A DNA stretch of 64,000 nucleotides from Lepidodermella squamata. Lineage: Eukaryota > Animalia > Gastrotricha. The notes under the pieces were generated by a model, which searched no databases, was not told where the DNA came from, and saw nothing but the letters and a program-made list of their open reading frames with translations. The stretch covers positions 3,596,001 to 3,660,000 of the forward strand of contig JBLDXI010000032.1 of NCBI GenBank assembly GCA_047495785.1. Direction: 5' to 3'. The position numbers were made by a program, and so were the translations under genes. How positions within the stretch are numbered: the first letter of the stretch is position 1; each line of letters opens with the position of its first letter. Below, in pieces: positions 3,001-16,386 of this stretch.

Positions 3001-6000
3001 GAGGAATGAGGACGCATTTGTAGGCGCAGGTTTCACCCCTGTCGGAGCGACAACTGCCGGCAAATTGCGGATAAGACCAAGCCCGGGGAAGCGGCCTTTC
3101 GGCTGCAACTCGGGTGGGAATTCGATGTGAGATATCAAATCGAGGACTTTCCCCTCAGGCCATATTTCAATTCGCTCAGCGCCGGCGAAAATTAGGGCAA
3201 CTCCCCACCCGGTATACAACAGTTGAGGCGGAATGTCAGTTGAAACCTGAAATTTCGTGGTAATGCACGTCGATGCGAACTCTTCGACATTGGAATGTGA
3301 AGTCACTTCTACGTAACACGCCGTTGCATCAACAAAATTGCACGATAGTGCCATCCTCAGCAGTCGAATATTCGTAATCCATTCGAGCAGACACGGCGCA
3401 AGAATTCGGCTCGATGTCCAAGGGTACCGAACCAACTGCCTGACCACAGCGAAAAGCTTTTGATAGGCGAATAGTACCAGATGCGGCGCTGTGATTGACG
3501 GGCTGTGGAGGCTATCAGCGGCTATTGTTGCCAAGACTGATTTAACAAGGGGTGGAGGAGGGTCATATGATGACACAATATGTAGAAGCAAAATCCAAAG
3601 CAAATTTTTCGAGTCAACCGGTAAATTTTGCGAAGTGAGGGATCGGATGATTTCTCCAATCACGTAATCATATGTGACGCGATTCTTGCTGCTTGAAATT
3701 GAGTCCATCGAAGTGTTTGGCGATGACTGGTGGTTAGCATGGAAATTTCTTAGCAACGCATCGACACCTTCACCATGGCAAGCCACAATAAGCAGAGAAG
3801 CCAAAACCAACTGATGCAAGCCAGAGCCTTCCTTATCGCCTACAAATAGCGAAACGATCCGTGAAACGTAATTCACGTCTTGTTGATGTGGGGTAGGGTC
3901 AGGCCGATTTTTGCCCGGAAATGACGTTTGCATGAAAGCACCGACCACGGTTTTCAACACCCCTGCATCTGATGGAACGATCGTCGCTAAATTTCTGATA
4001 TTGTTAATCGCCGGAACGATATGACGATCGTCATCGACGAGCTGCCAATTCAGCAAATACGCGATAACTTCAGGCAAAAGGTCACGAGGCGGGGCGCTCT
4101 TCGCACTGGTTTGGACCAATGGTGTAGGTTGGCCGATCGCGCTGTCTTTTGACGTATTCGCTGACGGAGTTTTCGGGGTTTGAGATTGCCGGTGTGGTGT
4201 TGTTGGTTGGACCAGATTAGGCCGAGGTTGCGGCGCTTTCGCCGCTTCTTCAGCTTTACGCTTTCTCTCCTCGGCTCTTTTGGCCTCACGACGTTCGTCC
4301 AAAAAGCGGAAAACCGACTTCTGCCACTTGGAAATAGCTGCCCATCGCTTTGAATGAACTTCAGCTTCCAGACGTCGGAACATCGAATCAGTCACGAAAA
4401 CCAGTGTTCGCCCGATTTGGTAGTCCTTCACCTCGGCGGCGCCAATTTTGTTGAGAACGTAAAGACATGCGTCGACTGGTTGAAGCGATTCAACTGCCTC
4501 GGATGAAACGAGGAGTGGGGCGTATGTCGCGACGAATTCTTGATGTTTAACCCGAACAGGATACCCGGCTTTTCGAACCCGGGCTGCATCGATGATACCG
4601 CCACATCTCAACTGGTCTAGCACACATTCAGCGTCGAAATGTCCGGATTTCTTCGTCCGATTCGGCCGAATGCAACGAACGAAGTGCGGCTGGCATCGAT
4701 TGACAACAGCAATTAGCTGATTCAGCGACTCCTGATACATAGAAGAAACGGTCGAAAAATTACGCGTCCTCCTCGGAGGCGAGTTAACAGGTGGGTCACC
4801 GCCGCCCAGCTGCATCTTGTTGCCAGATGCGAAAACGGAAGCAATGATCGGATTCTGGCTTTTCACCAACATATCAATGATGTCTGGTCGGTTAGCGTCG
4901 CGATTTTTCTCTAGGAAGCCGCGAGTCTGGTAGCGAACTTTGCCCGCATAATGCGCAATGCTGAATTCTTCACTCGACTTGGCTCGGTCATAGGCTGGGT
5001 TGTACCGATTCAACTCGTTGCATTTGTTCAAGAATGATGCATCTGAAGCCTGAAGAAAAACACCTGAATAAAAATTCCTCCTTAAAATATTTAGCAACTC
5101 ACATTCGGCATAAAACAGTGATCATCCAAAATGGTCATAATCCCAGTTTTCTTGTTGACCAGCAAATCAATGCAATTAGCGTTATCATTCATCTCAATTT
5201 TGGTCCACTTCAAGCCATCGCGAATGTAAGACTCTTGTTCCATCTTGATAACTTCTTTCAAGAAATACGCGTGGAGAGACTCGCTCGCAAAATTGATACA
5301 CAGCTGCTCGAGACTATTTTGATTCGGGAAATCTTCGAACCCGAAAATATCCAAAATACCAATGTGGCCAATTTTCGCTTCAGGATCCGAAGCAGATTGT
5401 GGATTCACACCTTGCATGGAATTCGCCAAATTAATGTTGACTTTGCTTGACAGCCAGCTGAAAAGCTTCGCGTAAATGAACTTGGCTATCGCGTCTCGTA
5501 CGACAAAAGCTTGATCAGGAGTCAGCGCGAACGTCAAACGTTCGTGACCAGCTTCAGTAGTTTTAACAGTTAAGAGACTAGCCAAAGTGCCTTCGGAGAG
5601 CCTCATCAGACTAGCGATGGTCTGAAGCGGCCTCAACGAGGCAAGTCGAAGTTCACTGACAACGCCTTGTTCATTAACCACTTTCTCAAATTTGATCGTT
5701 CCAAGGTGGCAAATTGAAGCAAGCATGGCCCATAGAGCTTTAAGCTCTTCGACATTTAGACCTAGCGCTACGAGGCGAGCGTTTATTTTCGAAAAGCGAT
5801 CTCTCAACTCGTGAGTCTGTTGAGGTAGACCAGTAGCGAAGTAGTCGCAGGTAACCAGCTGGTCGAGTTGATAACTCCTACGCTGGTCATCCGACAATCC
5901 CCCGATAAATTCGTAGAAAATGTGATAGTTCTTCTCGCTCTTGCTGTGGCACACCACGCGAGATCTTTCGAGTAAATAATCCGAGACTTGAACAGCGATC

Positions 6001-6758
6001 AAGTTACCCTGCTGAAATGCGAGATCGATCAATCGGCCGTGCCGACTTGAGTTGTAATTCAGTGATGTAGATGCATTGCCGAAAGACTCGAGAATGCCGA
6101 GGCCGTCCATGATTTGCTGGCAAATTTTACGCAGTTTGTTGTCATTCGAATTGTTGTTTTTGTTCACGATATACGAAATTAAAAGGCGAGCGCTTTCGGT
6201 TTTTCCACTACCACTTTCGCCACTGATTGAAATGATTTGATCGCCATTCAACCGTCGAATATTTTCCAACGCATCATTTCCGATTGTGTAAAGATGGGGC
6301 GGAAGAACTTTACCGCCGGATGTGCGTCTCGAGTACTCCGAAGTGGTCGCATCGGAATATAAATTGTCGACCTTCTTGTATGGATTAATTGCGAGAACTA
6401 GCCGGCCCAGGTGGGTGTAAAGCTCATCTCTAACGAAGCGGTTTCGCAATAGCTCAACTACAGCACCTGGGGCGATAGTCGGGAGTTGGAGGATGTCATC
6501 GACAAGCAGCGATGTGGTTTGTGAGATCGCCGAAGGTAGTGTCGGAGGTGAAAGCGTTAACGAGTAACCGGCGTTTTGAAATTTAGTTGGAGCCGGTAAT
6601 TGCGGTGGAGGCGGCGGCGGAACTGACTGTGATTGCGAATGCGGCTTCTGGTCTTCTTTTTGAACTTGTTTCACAGGAGCAGCTGGTTCTGTCTTCACAA
6701 TCGCATGCCCCGCTGGAGTTGAATTCGAGTTAGGGAGAAGAGACCTTAGGATATTCAT
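1..6758 (-). CDS. Unconventional MyTH4-FERM myosin, class XV-like (3' end runs off the window)
   Basis: Exons by eye: 6758-5103, 5049-1408, 1263-1127, 1063-1038, 892-806, 755-<1, all GT-AG and frame-compatible. Motor motifs GESGSGKT, NSSRHG, DIFGFE, HFVRCIRPN; one IQ-like segment; SH3 (LVLRKNDIVYV...LLYGTCRGRCGFFP); C-terminal MyTH4 (ITDEIFLQTVK) and start of FERM (IRIFLPG...LVIRRLSWLFP). Class assignment comes from domain order only. Confidence 0.85.
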
Positions 6759-7259
6759 AAAATAAAATAAAAAGCCTCCCTAAAATAACAAAAACATTTA
6801 TTTAACTTCCCATCATAGTATTCGAATTTACTGTCGTGCATGAGACCAGCCAAAATATAGAAATGAAATAGAACCGATATTACTCAAAATGAATGGTCGC
6901 AAATCACACTATGCGACTTATAAAGCAGTGTTCCTGGCAAAAGACTATAACAATAAGAAAATATTTTCGTTATAGATCTTTCTTAATAATAGCACTTGAC
7001 CCCACAACACCATAATTTTAGGATGCAAAATTATAATAAATAGGTGCGCTCCATCATTTCGTTATCGCTATTTACAAATTGATACAGAATATTTGGCCTG
7101 TAAGGGAAAATCCAGGAAACCAAGCAAGTCGAGCATTACAGTAGTAACATTTATTTTCCAAATATAACCAGGATTTAGACAGGAAGCAAGGTTAGATTAA
7201 TCAGATTGTATCATTTCAATAGCTATATATTATGAATGATTACATTGCTAGCGATAATT

Positions 7260-8807
7260 TCAAGAAGCGCCCATCGCCAAATTATTGCCACCGAATACTT
7301 GCAACTTCTGAGCGGTATGGAGGAGCAATTTCAGCGGCAACATGAACTGCCCAACCTCGCCGAAAGCGCAAGTCTTCGCCATAGTATTGTAGGCGGCCAT
7401 TGCAACGTTCAGGTCCTGCTTATCGACCGCGTCACTAACCTGACCTAAACAAGTCAAAAACGCAGGTGAAAGCTTGTTTTCCTCCAAGCTCTGGGTCAGA
7501 GCGGCTAGTTTTTTATCAACGTCTTCCAGAGTTTTCTTAGTTGGCGTAGGTGCTATTTGAGCGCACTTTGACGAGAGACTTTTCAATGACTCGATTGAGG
7601 CTTGAGCTGCTGAGGCTGACACGGGTGCAGTAGTTTGCACGGCTGTTTTCGAGCCCTTCGCCGCCGCTTTCGCGATGATGCTCACATCCGGATCGTTCCA
7701 GCCGTTGTTAGGAGTTTGAATATTCATGAAAGATACTATATTCGGGTTAAATGCCGGGTCCATTGGAGGTGGCGGCGGCATACCAGCGGTCGGAGGTTGG
7801 GACTGTACGACGCCGTATGGTGACATGTATGGATTAGGAGGTGGCACAGAACTGTTTCCCAACATAGGTGGCGCACCAGGTGTCTCAGGGCCAGTATAGG
7901 TTATCGGATTCGAGCCATACGTGTTCCCTGATGCCTGAGGAGGCGATTGAAATAGCTGGGATGGGGGTGCGACATTCGAGCCATAGGGAGCTGTGTACGG
8001 CTGGGGCTGGCTATTCATAGGCTGGGTACCGTACGGAGCCGAAAGAGCCGGATGAGGCACATAATGCTGGGCAAAATTCGCGCCGCCTGATGGAGCTGGG
8101 TTGAACGCAGTCGGCACCTGGTTCGCAAATGCCGACGGTGCGAACGGAGCGGTTGAGGGTGGTGGGGCTTGTTGATTCGCAACAGGGTTGTAGGCCGGCT
8201 GGCTCGGCACAAATGGAGCCGAAATTGGTTGGCTAGGCTGTGGTTGGAAAGCATTCACAACAGGGTTGAACGCCGACTGTGCCTGTGGCTGAAACGGCGA
8301 CGGAACAAACGGCGCTGGAGGTTGAGTTGCGGGCTGCTGGAAAGCCGTGACTGGTGCTAGAAGTGGCGCGTTTTGAGAGTAAACATTACTAGTAACATCT
8401 GCCGATGGAATACCAGAATTCGTTGGCACCGCAGCCGGGACGAACGGGGCAGGTGCCGTAATTGCGGTCTCTTGCGGTGGACTGGTCGAGTCAGGCAACA
8501 CAGGTGCGCTAGGGGCAGGGTTCGCCTCTGCTTGAGTTGCTGGTTCCACTTGAGCAGAATTCGGCAACTCAGGCTGAGATGAGCTGCTGACAGCCTCGGT
8601 AGTCGTGGTCGGTTCTGCGGGGGGTGGCGGGGCGAACGCTGCCACCGGCGCAGGTGGAACAATCGGAGGAGGCGCTGAAAAAGCGGAAAGAATCGGCTGA
8701 TCAACTGGAGGAGGCGGCACTAAAGGGTCGGACGCAGCATCGGCCTCACCGCTATTCCACGGCAATTTTGCAACGGGAGCTGGAGCGAAAACGGCAGGAT
8801 TTTGCAT
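7260..8807 (-). CDS. Stand-alone Sec31 proline-rich + C-terminal helical (SRA1/Sec31-like) protein; partial duplicate of the neighbouring Sec31
   Basis: 515-aa intronless ORF, Pro/Ala/Gln-rich, with GWNDP motif and C-terminus LEDVDKK...EVGQFMLPLKLLLHTAQKL matching the Sec31 C-terminus LEDVDKK...EVGQFLLPIKLLVHTAQQL; no WD40 or ACE1 region. Acceptor-like TCTCTTCAG (CAG at 8812-8810) 2 nt before the ATG. Confidence 0.8.
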   Translation of the reverse strand: MQNPAVFAPAPVAKLPWNSGEADAASDPLVPPPPVDQPILSAFSAPPPIVPPAPVAAFAPPPPAEPTTTTEAVSSSSQPELPNSAQVEPATQAEANPAPSAPVLPDSTSPPQETAITAPAPFVPAAVPTNSGIPSADVTSNVYSQNAPLLAPVTAFQQPATQPPAPFVPSPFQPQAQSAFNPVVNAFQPQPSQPISAPFVPSQPAYNPVANQQAPPPSTAPFAPSAFANQVPTAFNPAPSGGANFAQHYVPHPALSAPYGTQPMNSQPQPYTAPYGSNVAPPSQLFQSPPQASGNTYGSNPITYTGPETPGAPPMLGNSSVPPPNPYMSPYGVVQSQPPTAGMPPPPPMDPAFNPNIVSFMNIQTPNNGWNDPDVSIIAKAAAKGSKTAVQTTAPVSASAAQASIESLKSLSSKCAQIAPTPTKKTLEDVDKKLAALTQSLEENKLSPAFLTCLGQVSDAVDKQDLNVAMAAYNTMAKTCAFGEVGQFMLPLKLLLHTAQKLQVFGGNNLAMGAS

Positions 8808-9084
8808 TGCTGAAGAGATTCCAATAAATTAAACTTCTATAAATTTATTTGAAACAAAAAATTCAAAAGCTGTGCACCAGATTCAAAGCCAGCAACAAAC
8901 AGCACCGGAAAATAAATTCTTTCTCGTGAAATTCATATGGCAGAAAATATATCAATAGAATGAGTGAAAGTTTCAAAATGGCAAGTTAAACAACAGCAAA
9001 AGAGATAGGCAATCATGGAAGGTAGGCTCAAATAAAGATATCAATAATAATTATCTGTCAGCATCAAGCTCTTGGCTACTTGGC

Positions 9085-9369
9085 TTAGCCAGATTTAGAC
9101 TCGTCTTTTGCTGGGCCAAACAGAGCGCACTTGGTAGCAACGGGTTTGTAGTCAGGATCACCCGGAGCGGGCTCTTTCGCTTCTCCAAAGGGGGCGCAAG
9201 CTACGGCCACGGGCTCTTTTCCGTCACCAAATGGAGCACAGGTTACAGCTACAGGCTCATTTCCATCACCAAAGGGAGCGCAAGCTATTGCGACGGGCTC
9301 TTTCCCATCCCAAGACGGAGCGCATTTAGTAGCAACTGGCGTTTCCTGTTTCTCTGTTGAATTGTCCAT
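9085..9369 (-). CDS. 94-aa tandem-repeat peptide/protein with five PVAxxCA(P/L)(F/S)(G/W) units, unknown function
   Basis: ATG-initiated ORF with 14-aa (42-nt) periodicity; repeats differ heavily at synonymous positions (motif Val = GTT, GTC, GTA, GTG, GTT), supporting coding status; acceptor-like TTTTCCTTAG (TAG at 9401-9399) upstream. Confidence 0.75.
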   Translation of the reverse strand: MDNSTEKQETPVATKCAPSWDGKEPVAIACAPFGDGNEPVAVTCAPFGDGKEPVAVACAPFGEAKEPAPGDPDYKPVATKCALFGPAKDESKSG

Positions 9370-9930
9370 TTGATAATAAATAATCAGATCAAATAAATCT
9401 AAGGAAAAATAAATGCATGAAGTTAAATATACGTCGAGCCTTATAGCATAATTTTTATTTCACCGTGTGACTTACATGACAGCAGCACATATCGGATGAA
9501 CATATATATCATTTATTATGCACATTATGATTGCAACAGTTTTGATCCTCGTCGACTTGATCACACGAAAGAAGATAATGAAAGAAATTCTTGCAACCAA
9601 AAAATACACACGCAATTTTCAGCAAGGTGGTCTAGTGATTTAATCATGTTTCTCAACTAATTCGAGCACGCATTCGGGAAAATAATAATATTAATAATAC
9701 GATACTCAATCGATATCAAAATCGACCAACGCAAGCGCTAAATAGAAAATTTGTTTTCGTCTTCTCAAATTCAATTCACTCAGCAATTATAAAGCTATTT
9801 TTTTACTAGCCTTGGATATGCAGACCATTTTAATGCCCACCTACTAAATCAGTTCGCATTACTAAGCAGTGTTACCATAAAGCAATAACAAACCAGGTTC
9901 TTTGATAGTTCAATTAAATAAGCAATATTT

Positions 9931-12900
9931 TCACATTCGAATGTTGAGCTGTTGTGCTGTGTGAACGAGAAGTTTTATCGGCAGTAGAAATTGTCCAACC
10001 TCAGCGAATTGACCGGTTCCGGCAAGATGTTGACAAACCGCTGTAGCCCCGGCGAAATCCCCATTTCGAATGGCAGCGCTGAGTTGCAGCAGGCCTGCGA
10101 TAGTATTGGGTGAAATTTGTTTCAGCCGCAGCTTCTCGTACAGCATAGGCATTTTCTTGTCGACATCTTCCAACTTCTTGCGAGTTCCATGCGGAGCTGC
10201 GTCGAAGCATTTATTCAACAGCTCGCACAGCGCGTCAGCAATCGGTTGAAGATCGGCGGCAACTTGAGGTGGATTTCGGTCATGGGTGTGACTGGCAACA
10301 CTGCTGGTAGGACTCGGCTCCGGGTTAGGCGCGGCATGACCCTGGGAAGGGTCGATAGTTAGCGGGTTGTAAGCGTTGACTGGCGCTTCATTCCAGCTAT
10401 TTGGAGGACGTCTGTCAAGAAATGCATTACCCCTAGCTTGCTGCCCATCATTTTGGTTTTGCCCAGGATAGTGCTGCTGCTGCTGCTGCTGCTGATTATG
10501 AGGATTGAATTGAGAAGGGTTCTGCTGACCCGGTACAAACATTTGTGAAGAGGCTGGCGGTGGGGCATAGCCCTGTCCATTCGTCTGAGGCGGCATAGCT
10601 GCAGCTGGGTTATACGGCGTAGGCGTTACAGATGGGGGTGGATAGGCGGGTTTCGAGCCTGGTAACGCGTAATTTGACGGCATAGGCGGTGGTGGCTGGG
10701 CTTGCGCTGCTGGTTGGAACTGGCCTGGCATAGGGGGTGGCGCGACTTGTTGCTGCTGGAACTGTTGTTGCTGCTGTTGCTGTAATTGACCTGGTAGAGG
10801 AGGTGGGGGAACATGGTTTTGCGGCTGCGTCGCTTGGAACTGCCCCGGCGGAGGAGGCGGTAGTACGGACGATTGATGCTGCGCCGGTTGGAATTGACCA
10901 GGCATGGGTGGGGGCGGTATATTCTGTTGTTGCTGAGCTGGATGATATTGCCCCGGCATCGACGGCTGGTATTGACCAGGCATTGGCGGCGGAGGACCAC
11001 TAGGTTGAAACTGGCCGGGTGGATGCGCAGAATGTGCCGGCGGGAACTGCCCTGGTAATGAATTTTGAGCCTGAGCTGGCTGAAACTGGCCAGGCATGGG
11101 CGGGGGTGGGCCGGAGAGTTGAGGTTGAACAGGCTGGTATTGGCTCGGAGGTGGAGCAGTAGCTTGAGGCTGGAATTGCCCAGGAAGAGGCGGAGGAGGT
11201 ACAGCAGCTGGTTGCGGTTGAGGTTGGAATTGACCGGGTAATGGCGGTGGTGGAACGGAAGATTGCTGCTGGTATTGGTTCTGCTGGTACGGTTGAGGAG
11301 GAGACGGCGGCTGCTGAGGAATATACGGCGAAGGCCGTTGCCCAGGGGGCTGGGTCGGCGGCATTCCGGGCATGAACGGCGCGACACTAGGAGGCCGTTG
11401 CAGCTGCTGTTGCTGTAGTACAGGCGGGGCGTGAGCAGACGGGTCGTAAAATGAAGGTTGAGAGTGGGCCGGCATTGCAGCCGGGGCTAGAACATTTGAC
11501 GAATCAGGCGTGACCTGTTCCACATACTGGTTTTGATGAGCTATTGCAGGCGAATACATGTGCGGCATCGGCGGCGTTGGAGCAGCGAGGCGATTCGGCA
11601 TTTGAGTGACCCCGGTGACCGGCGGGCCTTGATACTGGTTGCTCTGGGGCTGCTGCTGGTAATGCGCAATTGGCTTCCCACCCACATGAAACGAAACCCC
11701 GGCACCAACCGGAGTCCCTGTGGTCGATCCAACGAACGATTCCTCGGTCGCGTTTGATGACCGCTGACTAGCTGCGGCGCTGATTACATTAGGCGATGGC
11801 CTGACGTCAAGTCTCCTGAACGGAGTCGAAGGAACAGGTAAACCAGTCGTCCGAGGCGATAAATTCAACGCGTGGTACAAACGATGGCGGAGTTCCAACA
11901 ACGCCAGCTTGTTATTAGGTGTCATTTTCACAACTTCAAACGCTAAATTCAGCTCGCCCTGTTCAACCAACAGTTTGGCGTACTGCGCCAATGTTTTGAT
12001 CGAAGCATCGTCAAGTTCGATATCACCCTGAGCTGATTTCGGAAGAACAGTCCCAGCATAGGCAAGCAGTAATTCAACGTGTTCCAGCAAATCTTTGGTT
12101 TCATTCGGTTTTTGGTACTTGACTCGCTCATTGATGCGCTCGCTAACGCATTTGCTGAATGACGAAATATTGGCGGAGACGAGGTGGCAAATTGCTGCTG
12201 GTCCGAACATTTGCGCGGCTTCCAGTCGGTCGGCCAAAGTTTCAGCCAAATCAGCTTGATAATCTTTATCCATTGCGTATTTCAAAATGATAGCCAAGCA
12301 AGTCGGCCATTGCCCGACGTCAAGGTACGATGCGACTGAATCGAGATCCCCAAGACAGATTCCGGAAATCAAGCGAGAAATCGGGTCTTGGGCAGATCGC
12401 ATGACGTAACGCAGAGCTTTCGCAAATAAATCTTGACTTGCAGAGGCTGATAGAACCAAAGCATTAGCATAGCGGCCCGAATGTAAACAAGCTTCGACGG
12501 CAAGCTCAGGTCGAGCGGTGAGAAGGCCCTCGACTATCATCGATTCACCTGTTGGGTCATTATCGGATTCGGGCAGACTGTAAGGATCGGTCGCTTCAAC
12601 AACAGGTTCCCCTCCATTTGTATCGCCATTAGTTCCGGCATAGCCTGTCGAATTTTGAGATGAGCTTGCATTGAAATGCACATTGTCCAAAATTCGACCA
12701 GTAGCTCCGTAAATCTAGTAGAAAAACAAGGGTTCAGTAATGCTAAGGGTAAAATCGAATGTGGGCTTCAGTAAACTTCTTCAGACTGGGGATCGGGTGG
12801 TTTCATGAGAAAAGTTTCAAATCTTTGCAATTCATTAAGCAGACTTTATGAAACACCCTGTATAAACCAACCACAGGCTTCATCAAGCCTTCATATACTA

Positions 12901-14767
12901 TCTGAGAGACGGCGTAGGAGTTTAATATAAAAAAGTGGAATGTTCCGTTCTTTTGTTTTGCTTGAAACCCACTTTTCTTTGATTTTTTATGCTTCAATAA
13001 AGAGAGTCTAAGCACGGAAAACAAACATCTTTGCTCTAGCTCCTCGCGTGCTGCTTTTCGTTCTACATTTTTTTCTATCCAAGTTTTTTTCATTTTTTTG
13101 CGGAGCTTTGAATTTAAGGAAAAATCTTGCTGCAACAACGTTTTTACCTTTTCAGGAATAGATTTAGTGTCGATACCAAGCAATGAAATGTATTGACCGG
13201 CACGCTGATCGGAAACGCTAGCATCCAAAAACTTCCAAATCAGTTGAATGTCAGCATCTTCGCAAGACGCCGCACGATGTGCCGAAAACTGACCCATCAT
13301 CTGGCGTTTAGCCTCCACTTGCTGGCTGGTCAAAACCGAGGCAACTTCGCGTGCTCTAACGGCAAGTGCTTCGTCGGTAACCACTTGACTGGTCGTAACA
13401 ACTCGGCCGTTTTCAACCGAACAGGTCACTAGCCTGTTAGCAAAGGCAAATCGAGCGCAGCATCTCGGCGCCATCCATTTAGGTGGCTTGGGCGGTACAA
13501 TATTAGGCACGTTTGCATTCTCGTCAATTTCGCATAAATCGTCACGACTCGATTCTTTAGTCATTGGTTCAGTTTCGAGCTGGTCGAAAGCGTCGAGAAC
13601 ATCACGGCGAGACGCTTTCCTCTCGCGTACTATCGAAGTCCTGGCAAAACCAAGGGCTGTTTGATGACCCGAAATGACGTTATGTAGAGACAGCATGCCA
13701 TCCTGGCGTGAAGTAATGAAGAGACCTGGGTCGATGGACGACCAGGCCACTGATTCAATTGCAGACGCTTTGCTACTAGCAAGCAAATTCCCGACCAAAT
13801 TTGCATGATTAGGGTCCCACAATAGAAGGCTACCGTCCTTTCCGGAAGATAGCAATAAACTCGAGTCTTGCGAGCACCATGACAATGAGGTAACTCCATC
13901 CTTATGGCCAAATAATGACTTTATCGGGGCAGTTGGTTGCTTCAAGTCCCATAACTGAATCACAGGTTGCGAATTAGCATAATCAGTCGAAGCTATCAGC
14001 AGTTGGGTGGCGACATCGGGCGACCAGCACAGCAGTTCAGGTTTAAGGCGGCACAAACCATCGGTCAATCGGATGACAGGCTCACTCTTCCGCAAGTCCC
14101 AAATAGTAGATTTCGCAGATGACGCTGTGCCGAGGATGTGCTGAACTTGCCTATTCCAGGCCACGGTCAAAATCGGTTCGGTATGGGCCTGGGTGCTAGC
14201 ACCATGGCCTGGTACCATGTGAGTGTTGGGTTTATTAAGATCCCAAATAAACACAGATGAATCCGCCGAGCCAGAGCACACCAAATTAGGCTGAAATCGG
14301 TTCCAATCGAACGAAGTGACAGCACCCGAATGTTGGTGGTCATATTTTGAATCATTCAAAACTTCTTCGTCTTCCAATGAATCGTCGAAAAGTTCGCAAA
14401 CTTTGGGGAAGAATACACTGCCATCATCCCCACCAAAAGCTAACACGCCGCCGTCGTGTTTTGTCCATGTAACGGCACGAATGCTAAAATAATAACATAG
14501 AAACGTGAAAGGCAATTAACGGCTGTCCAACTTACACAGTCTTTAGTTTCGTGCACTTCGAGATGTTAAATTTCCCATCAGAGTCATACTGAAAGAACTC
14601 AACCACTGATGTTGACCTAAAAGTATACATAGAATTAGTTGTCATAAGGAGAACAAGAATTAGAAATCAGCGAACCCCACATCACGGCCTTCATCGCTCT
14701 CTCCAGGCGAAATCGATAATATTTGTCCTTCTACGCAACGCGTTGGTGACCAAGCCAATAGCGACAT
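9931..14767 (-). CDS. SEC31: COPII outer-coat protein Sec31
   Basis: Exons 14767-14676, 14616-14536, 14483-13148, 12714-9931. WD40 repeats (FDWNRFQPNLVCSGS, VAWNRQVQHILGT, WSPDVATQL, IQLWDLK), KPPKWM motif, alpha-solenoid region, long Pro-rich region and C-terminal helical domain. Confidence 0.92.
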
Positions 14768-15180: not shown

Positions 15181-16386
15181 CTAATAGTTTTCCTCGGTCG
15201 ATTGCTTGACCTGAGCGAAACCAACGCGGTTATTACCCATGTCAAATTCGGCGTAGAAGCGGCCGATGAAAACATCACCGAGAATCCAGAGAGGGCCCAT
15301 TGGAGCAGGGATGTCAAGCCCCATCAAACCAGACAAGCAAATTGTCTGCCCCATTTGTTGCATGACCAGAACGTAGTCTTTATAGTTCAAGGTGAACTTG
15401 CGACCAGCAAGAATAAAATCGATAGGCGGAAGAGAGTAAATGTTCTCACACTTGAACATCCACTCGCCGTTCACAATTGGAATAGCTCCCAGGGCCTTGT
15501 TCAACGCTTCAATGTCAGCCTTTGGCCCAGCAAGGAGCGAAGTTCCGGTATCAGCAATCGCTTCGCATCCCCCTTTGCAGACCGAAACGCCGCCAATCTG
15601 GACACCGTCCATTTTAAATTGCCAGTAACCTTCGCGATCAACAGGTAGGTAGGTGAAGTTTCCGGTGTAATAATTAGGATCAGAGCCACCGAGGATAAGC
15701 TCACCGCCGATGGCAGCTTTGGGGTCACGGTTCAGCCAGAACGAAAAGACAGGTTGATCAACTTTACCCTGAGCAACCATGGTGTTGAAAACAGGAGGGA
15801 CGCCATCGACTGAAATAGTTGGATAGCCCATTCCAAGAATGCCGTCAAACTTGCCAACGGCAAATGGAATCGCAGGAACCTTAGTAGCTTCAGCGAATCC
15901 TTGGTTATCAACCGTTATGCTACCGACTCCGACAGCATCCGAGCTGATGACGCCCCAGAGTTCACCGGAACCATAAACAATGTGAAAAGCTGTTCCATTT
16001 GCTTTGTACGTGCTCGACTTGGAACTGTCATACTTCGAGTGAAGCAAGCAGGCAACATCAGTCCAAGGGCATTTTTTAGATGGTACCCACAAGTTGGATG
16101 ATCCAGTGTCGAAAACCACCTTGAAATGCTGCTGAGGGGTGCCCACTGAAATGACACCATAATACTGAGCGTCGAAGTAGTTTGACAGGGGTTCTGGAAC
16201 AGGCCCACCGACGTTCAGCGTGTGAGCCAGTTTCATGTACTTCTGACGAAGCGCTTCATGGGCAGCTTCCGTTTGAGCGATGGTACGTCGAGGGCTGTCC
16301 ATTTTGTAGAGAGAAACCCTTGACAGACCGCAGATTTCTGCTGCTGCAGCCAGGAGACACGTCAAACCAAGTATAAACTTTACCAT
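15181..16386 (-). CDS. CTSD: Cathepsin D-like lysosomal aspartic protease
   Basis: 401-aa intronless ORF; signal peptide, DAQYYG, catalytic FDTGSSNLW and [23 protein letters not shown]. Confidence 0.95.

Follow-up and report, generated by a model that had tools for sequence, protein, structure and literature searches.

Sec31 of the COPII (coat protein complex II) coat joins a cage-building part, made of a WD40 propeller and an alpha-solenoid, to a C-terminal half in which a Pro-rich region, the active fragment and a C-terminal domain follow one another. The PPP motifs of Sec31 and TANGO1 bind the gelsolin domain of Sec23, and the active fragment of yeast and human Sec31 accelerates GTP hydrolysis, with its W922 and N923 inserted at the active site of Sar1-Sec23 (PMC7594496). 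The C-terminal domain of yeast Sec31, which is essential in yeast, binds the alpha-solenoid rod of Sec31 (PMC8016994). The non-cage proteins TANGO1, cTAGE5 and Sec16 also use PPP motifs to bind the Sec23 gelsolin domain, and they compete with Sec31 (PMC7594496). Another close system is SRA1/SRAP, which has been called mammal-only and whose link with Sec31 has been called unclear (PMC8016994); the relation is otherwise undiscussed in the literature searched. Here we describe a gene that encodes little more than a Sec31 tail, located 1.1 kb downstream of Sec31 in a 64-kb stretch (hereafter the window) of the genome of the gastrotrich Lepidodermella squamata (assembly GCA_047495785.1, contig JBLDXI010000032.1, positions 3,596,001 to 3,660,000). 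The best overall explanation, to which we assign a probability of about 0.6, is that this tail gene is an independent, Sec31-derived gene whose product acts on the COPII coat. Coordinates are window positions, and Sec31, a 94-amino-acid gene, the tail gene and a myosin gene all lie on the minus strand.

The 515-amino-acid product of the tail gene carries the modules of the C-terminal half of Sec31 in the same order. A short N-terminus with the motif LPWNSG precedes a Pro-rich region of about 340 residues, which is followed by GWNDP (at residue 369 of 515) and by a C-terminal domain of 112 residues. The intact open reading frame (ORF), its GWNDP motif and the SWNEAP motif of the adjacent Sec31 were all found where the initial annotation had placed them, and the C-terminus that it had described as paralogous to that of the neighbour does match the neighbouring Sec31 exon (BLASTP, 44% identity over 99 amino acids, E 4e-23). 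A Pfam scan of the product gave no match to WD40 or Sec16/ACE1, whereas the neighbouring Sec31 exons have both. Without the WD40 propeller and the alpha-solenoid, the tail protein cannot form cage rods or vertices. That upstream exons are missing from the gene model is excluded by the start Met, which is conserved in the orthologue presented below. The N-terminal LPWNS has a counterpart in that orthologue (scaffold L001, 1417-1434) and none in the Sec31 tail region examined.

An AlphaFold model of the C-terminal domain, built on a 45-row alignment, has five helices and a core pLDDT (predicted local distance difference test) of about 95. Its best match in the PDB was the C-terminal domain of human SRA1p, 4NBO (target-normalised TM-score 0.85, root-mean-square deviation 1.5 Å, 99 columns); the entries 2MGX and 2YRU (human/mouse SRA1p) were also in the top set, followed by PRP18. 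The Foldseek E-values of these matches are weak (0.011). The modelled fold is that of the SRA1/Sec31 five-helix bundle, known from SRA1p and PRP18, as expected for the family. A single-sequence search of the PDB with the tail domain returned chance matches only, thrombopoietin among them, and word-based searches, one using the whole protein and one only residues 355-515, gave no match; Pro-rich words swamp the former, and the length window leaves out Sec31 and SRA1.

Compared with Sec31, the tail protein lacks WD40 and the alpha-solenoid, has the extra LPWNS, and reads GWNDP(D/N) in place of GWNDPP. SRA1/SRAP (PF07304; 4NBO, 2MGX, 2YRU) likewise stands alone and combines a WNDP motif with a Pro-rich stretch and the five-helix fold, but its GWNDPP is N-terminal, its Pro-rich linker is short and its length is about 230 amino acids, whereas in the tail protein the motif stands beside the domain, after some 350 Pro-rich residues. 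TANGO1, cTAGE5 and Sec16 are a functional precedent for a Sec23 binder that does not belong to the cage; they are, however, unrelated in sequence to the tail protein, have neither a WN motif nor an SRA1/Sec31 domain, and TANGO1 is membrane-anchored.

The tail domain is 40-43% identical to the two Sec31 domains of its own lineage, 30-36% identical to named arthropod and vertebrate-type Sec31A (BLASTP E 1e-12 to 1e-17), and 24% identical, over 46 amino acids, to a wasp SRA1 (P0251). This wasp protein of 238 amino acids, which a word search based on a mixed alignment brought up under the name steroid receptor RNA activator 1, hits SRA1 chains of known structure at 1e-10 and is therefore a true SRA1. 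The Pfam SRA1 model PF07304, which covers the C-termini of both SRA1 and Sec31, scored the tail gene at 15.3 bits and the local Sec31 at 22.7; since both scores are under the gathering cut-off of 23.3, the whole lineage is divergent. A profile made from the two window domains matched the yeast Sec31 domain at 1.2e-8 but, even with E values of up to 10 admitted, no chain of SRA1. In a maximum-likelihood tree of 45 domains, the grouping obtained was ((tail, tail) 100/99, (Sec31, Sec31) 99/95) 95/89, consistent with the lineage-specific duplication that had been proposed for the locus, and SRA1 was placed elsewhere, on a very long branch. Forcing the tail genes and SRA1 together cost 5.7 lnL (log-likelihood units), with a p value of 0.044 in the approximately unbiased (AU) test, which is marginal and was obtained with a single SRA1 sequence.

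Both paralogues share the derived motif G(Q/K)F.LP.K.L.HTAQ, which reads F.MPG.K.L.Q in other animals, and the short distance from the WN motif to the C-terminus of the tail protein (145 residues) is common only to the Sec31 of this lineage (153), the other metazoan Sec31 proteins having 165-250 with one outlier of 553. Gene conversion may inflate the similarity of the paralogues, but the reciprocal monophyly across two species is not its product. By these sequence comparisons, the duplication took place in this lineage, which is probably that of the gastrotrichs, and before the split of the two sampled species. It is very probable that the tail gene arose when the 3' part of Sec31 was duplicated in tandem, and that it is an independent gene.

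A profile run exhaustively against 1.84 billion representative proteins retrieved 247 relatives, with P0001 and P0002, both from one environmental metagenome series, far above the rest. P0001 is a Sec31 tail, and P0002 (P0002/P0151) is an orthologue of the tail gene, 422 amino acids long, that begins with M..LPWNS at the same start Met and has 7 PPP-type motifs, GWNDP and the same C-terminal domain. Scaffold L001, from a distant relative, carries a Sec31 tail, a spacer of 430 nucleotides, the tail gene and myosin-head genes, in the same order as the window. The 94-amino-acid gene that separates Sec31 and the tail gene in the window is absent from the L001 spacer, which makes it a recent insertion between two genes whose pairing is conserved. 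The Sec31 motif on L001 is NWNDPP (about 486-503), against SWNEAP in the window species; the window Sec31 is unusually diverged at this core of the active fragment. The initial annotation had supposed that the duplication separated GAP (GTPase-activating protein) stimulation from cage building. In that wording this part finds no support, since the window Sec31 keeps W and N and the relative's Sec31 reads NWNDPP. Nor is there support for a loss of the motif from Sec31 in favour of the tail gene: both Sec31 genes retain PPP motifs (12 in the Pro/Gln-rich region of the last exon in the window) and the C-terminal domain, and SWNEAP is confined to the window species.

Synonymous sites are saturated between the two species (pS 0.77-0.91), which precludes a dN/dS ratio; pN was compared with pS instead, together with variants within the lineage of the window. 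In the C-terminal domain the nonsynonymous difference, pN, is 0.31 between the tail genes but 0.18 between the Sec31 genes (dN 0.39 against 0.20), and the saturated pS with low pN in both genes indicates that both are constrained. Within the window's own lineage, 15 variants are listed for the ORF, and 13 of them are synonymous changes at third positions (p = 3e-5 for an expectation of one third). Several of these synonymous variants fall in the Pro-rich region, which is poorly alignable between the two species.

Three public sequencing runs, X1, X2 and X3, hold the stretch. X2 matches the window exactly in very long contigs, indicating DNA and probably the source of the window, and X1, which comes from a close relative ("organism A"), has the properties of RNA, as has X3. 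The Sec31 intron bin is nearly empty in these two runs (0.73 in X1 and 0.1 in X3, against 34 and 4-5 in neighbouring exon bins), and contigs of both are spliced from 12716 into the upstream exon, with 2 ambiguous bases at the junction; the position 12714, at which the annotated region had been made to end, is the true first base of the last Sec31 exon. X1 RNA contigs cover the ORF of the tail gene, as do a few from X3. The tail gene is expressed and selectively maintained.

The spacer between Sec31 and the tail gene is not empty, as it contains the expressed 94-amino-acid gene and two poly(A) sites. The second of these sites, at 8835, lies 24 nucleotides from the acceptor at 8811-8810; the first, at 9430, is followed by a candidate acceptor near 9400, so that both gaps measure about 24-30 nucleotides. 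This spacing suggests an operon-like chain that runs from Sec31 through the 94-amino-acid gene to the tail gene, and trans-splicing of the tail-gene mRNA at 8809 is likely. A loose end in X1 at 8768 was considered as a 5' end and rejected, since the SMART-type cDNA adaptor stands there in the wrong orientation; it was taken as a library chimera.

The tail ORF had alternatively been read as a 3' terminal exon of Sec31, joined through the acceptor that the initial annotation noticed 2 nucleotides before the ATG. That AG is present, it is a good acceptor and it lies on the Sec31 strand, but Sec31 has its poly(A) site at 9430, an expressed gene with its own poly(A) site comes in between, and the three runs contain no read joint of any kind across 7000-12900, Sec31-to-tail joints included, although contigs can miss rare isoforms. 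Moreover, the phase is wrong: if a donor of phase 0, such as the one confirmed by RNA at 13148, were joined to 8809, the reading frame would meet a stop 29 codons on, and an in-frame TAA stands 8 codons before the tail-gene ATG. The orthologue has the same Met, with its splice acceptor at a different distance. On these grounds the alternative-exon explanation is contradicted, with hardly any probability left to it, and the tail gene is an independent gene. Very little more can be granted to the view that it is an ordinary SRA1 orthologue that happens to adjoin Sec31. The Pfam match to SRA1, weak as it is, the best structural match to SRA1p and a language-model search in which SRA1-domain clusters rank first would all agree with that view, but matches of this type reflect the shared SRA1/Sec31 domain family. 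It is contradicted by the identity hierarchy, by the two-sequence profile and by the tree, in which the tail genes fall apart from SRA1, here represented by one sequence on a long branch with the marginal AU p value given above; it is therefore largely refuted. That the gene is a functionless duplicate, decaying or neutral, is just as improbable as a Sec31 exon. The low-complexity composition and the poor alignability of the Pro-rich region would fit such a duplicate, but the 515-codon frame is intact, it is expressed, its variants are overwhelmingly synonymous, and the orthologue has been kept despite saturated synonymous sites, with a pN of only 31% in the domain. Grouping with ordinary SRA1 orthologues, which the initial annotation had named as a refutation of its reading, was not observed.

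As regards its role, the free tail would act on the COPII coat. The PPP and GWNDP motifs may dock on Sec23-Sar1, like the Sec31 tail, and the C-terminal domain may bind the alpha-solenoid rod of Sec31, as in yeast Sec31. The tail protein would then have one of two effects: to supply Sec31 rods, in trans, with further contacts to the inner coat, or to sit on Sec23-Sar1 with no cage attached. Its mRNA probably originates from a polycistronic transcript led by Sec31, given the 24-nucleotide gap to the upstream poly(A) site and the acceptor at the ATG, and would be freed by spliced-leader trans-splicing; a shared transcript would couple the expression of the tail gene to that of Sec31. As all three types of tail module have been kept and the cage domains are gone, a soluble COPII accessory factor is the most economical proposal; the initial annotation had suggested that it may be an uncoating factor or a competitor. 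The mechanism itself we infer by analogy, and we hold it tentatively, at somewhat less than even odds.

Several points weigh against a COPII role. SRA1 shares the architecture and has been described as a coregulator in the nucleus, and the architecture is in consequence no proof of such a role. GWNDPP is nearly invariant among 45 long Sec31 proteins, and its second Pro, present in 44 of the 45, is D or N in the tail genes. The tail domain is evolving about twice as fast as that of Sec31, a possible sign that its partner has changed. The contig data showed no spliced leader at 8809, though contigs drop rare ends. Finally, the rod-binding surface of Sec31 has not been mapped to residues (PMC8016994), and its retention in the tail domain is for this reason uncheckable. 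These observations leave room for a rather unlikely alternative, in which the tail architecture was kept for a job outside COPII, for example as a nuclear or ribonucleoprotein-associated scaffold resembling vertebrate SRAP, for which the Pro-rich region would be a generic interaction platform. In its favour, SRA1/SRAP combines the same modules (GWNDPP, Pro-rich stretch and fold) and has been called functionally unrelated to Sec31 (PMC8016994); the doubled rate of the tail domain and the new, conserved N-terminal LPWNS point in the same direction. Such a job is, however, hard to reconcile with the tight linkage to Sec31 across deep divergence and with the retention in both species of the motif types that bind Sec23, PPP and GWNDP, and Pfam scans of the tail product found no nuclear-localisation or RNA-binding feature.

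To our knowledge, the Sec31 tail has been dissected in COPII work only by engineered truncations. In the tail gene, evolution has made this tail a separate protein and has kept it past synonymous saturation, providing a natural reagent for the function of an untethered tail; GAP stimulation, inner-coat bridging and binding of Sec31 rods in trans are the candidate actions. The gene is also a dated, clearly Sec31-derived parallel to SRA1, and is the one case in which derivation from Sec31 is directly visible. Its practical reach is limited, as the organism is obscure. By sequence comparison, stand-alone proteins with WNDP and the domain are more widely spread than mammals, occurring as SRA1 in the wasp and as small proteins in Glomeromycota and chytrids. 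These small fungal proteins (about 143 amino acids in Glomeromycota and about 300 in chytrids) resemble the tail protein in having WND(P/I)P and the domain without the cage, but are much shorter, and they are 26-27% identical to Sec31 domains and more weakly related to the tail gene. It is conceivable, but unlikely, that free Sec31 tails are recurrent, unrecognised soluble modulators of COPII, of which the gastrotrich gene would be a young case, with its linkage to Sec31 intact and perhaps a shared transcript, and SRA1/SRAP and the small fungal proteins older ones. If true, this would imply an overlooked function of the SRA1 family in export from the endoplasmic reticulum.

The features of the locus are collected in Table 1.

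Table 1. Features of the Sec31-tail gene locus, in window coordinates
Feature	Position	Strand	Basis
Tail gene coding sequence, 515 amino acids, single exon (ATG 8807, stop 7260-7262)	7260..8807	-	ORF, orthologue start, RNA coverage, variants
Tail gene, LPWNSG, second WN motif, residues 15-20	8748..8765	-	Conserved as A(K/R)LPWNS in both species
Tail gene, Pro-rich low-complexity region, 19% Pro, 8 PPP-type motifs (PPPn, PPAP)	7728..8747	-	Motif count
Tail gene, GWNDP, core of the Sec31 active fragment	7689..7703	-	Compared with metazoan consensus GWNDPP
Tail gene, C-terminal domain, five-helix bundle, residues 395-506	7290..7625	-	BLASTP, AlphaFold, PDB matches
AG splice acceptor 2 nucleotides before tail-gene ATG; candidate trans-splice site	8810..8811	-	Sequence
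Poly(A) site, 94-amino-acid gene	8835	-	Run X1 loose end, 21 T; AATAAA at 8849-8844
94-amino-acid repeat-peptide gene, outside the Sec31 family	9085..9369	-	ORF, RNA contigs, own poly(A)
Poly(A) site, Sec31 mRNA	9430	-	Run X3 loose end, 24 T; AATAAA about 25 nucleotides upstream
Sec31 (whole)	~14767 to 9931	-	ORFs, Pfam, RNA junctions
Sec31 exons 1 and 2	14676-14767 and 14536-14616	-	Read by eye; phases fit; outside the RNA-checked junctions
Sec31 exon 3, WD40 beta-propeller and following part	13148..14483	-	Pfam WD40 matches; donor after ...SIPEK at 13148
Sec31 last exon, alpha-solenoid part, Pro/Gln-rich region, SWNEAP, C-terminal domain, stop	9931..12714	-	Start set by spliced RNA contigs
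Sec31 SWNEAP motif	10381-10398	-	Sequence
Sec31 C-terminal domain	9934-10269	-	Helical domain
Myosin-head gene downstream of the tail gene	5091..6758	-	ORF; neighbourhood conserved on L001

Among the relatives retrieved, the short stand-alone SRA1/Sec31-domain proteins of Glomeromycota (P0149, P0201 and P0216) and chytrids (P0139 and P0194) have WND(P/I)P at the N-terminus or internally. An environmental clade (P0022, P0153, P0076, P0095 and P0125) consists of a stand-alone domain without the WN motif, and one of its members, P0076, matches the yeast Sec31 domain. In the window, the RNA-covered 94-amino-acid gene of the spacer is built of repeats of the CAPFGDGKEPVA type. Directly upstream of Sec31, a complete ORF of 401 amino acids with a signal peptide (15181-16386, minus strand) encodes a cathepsin-D-like aspartic protease.

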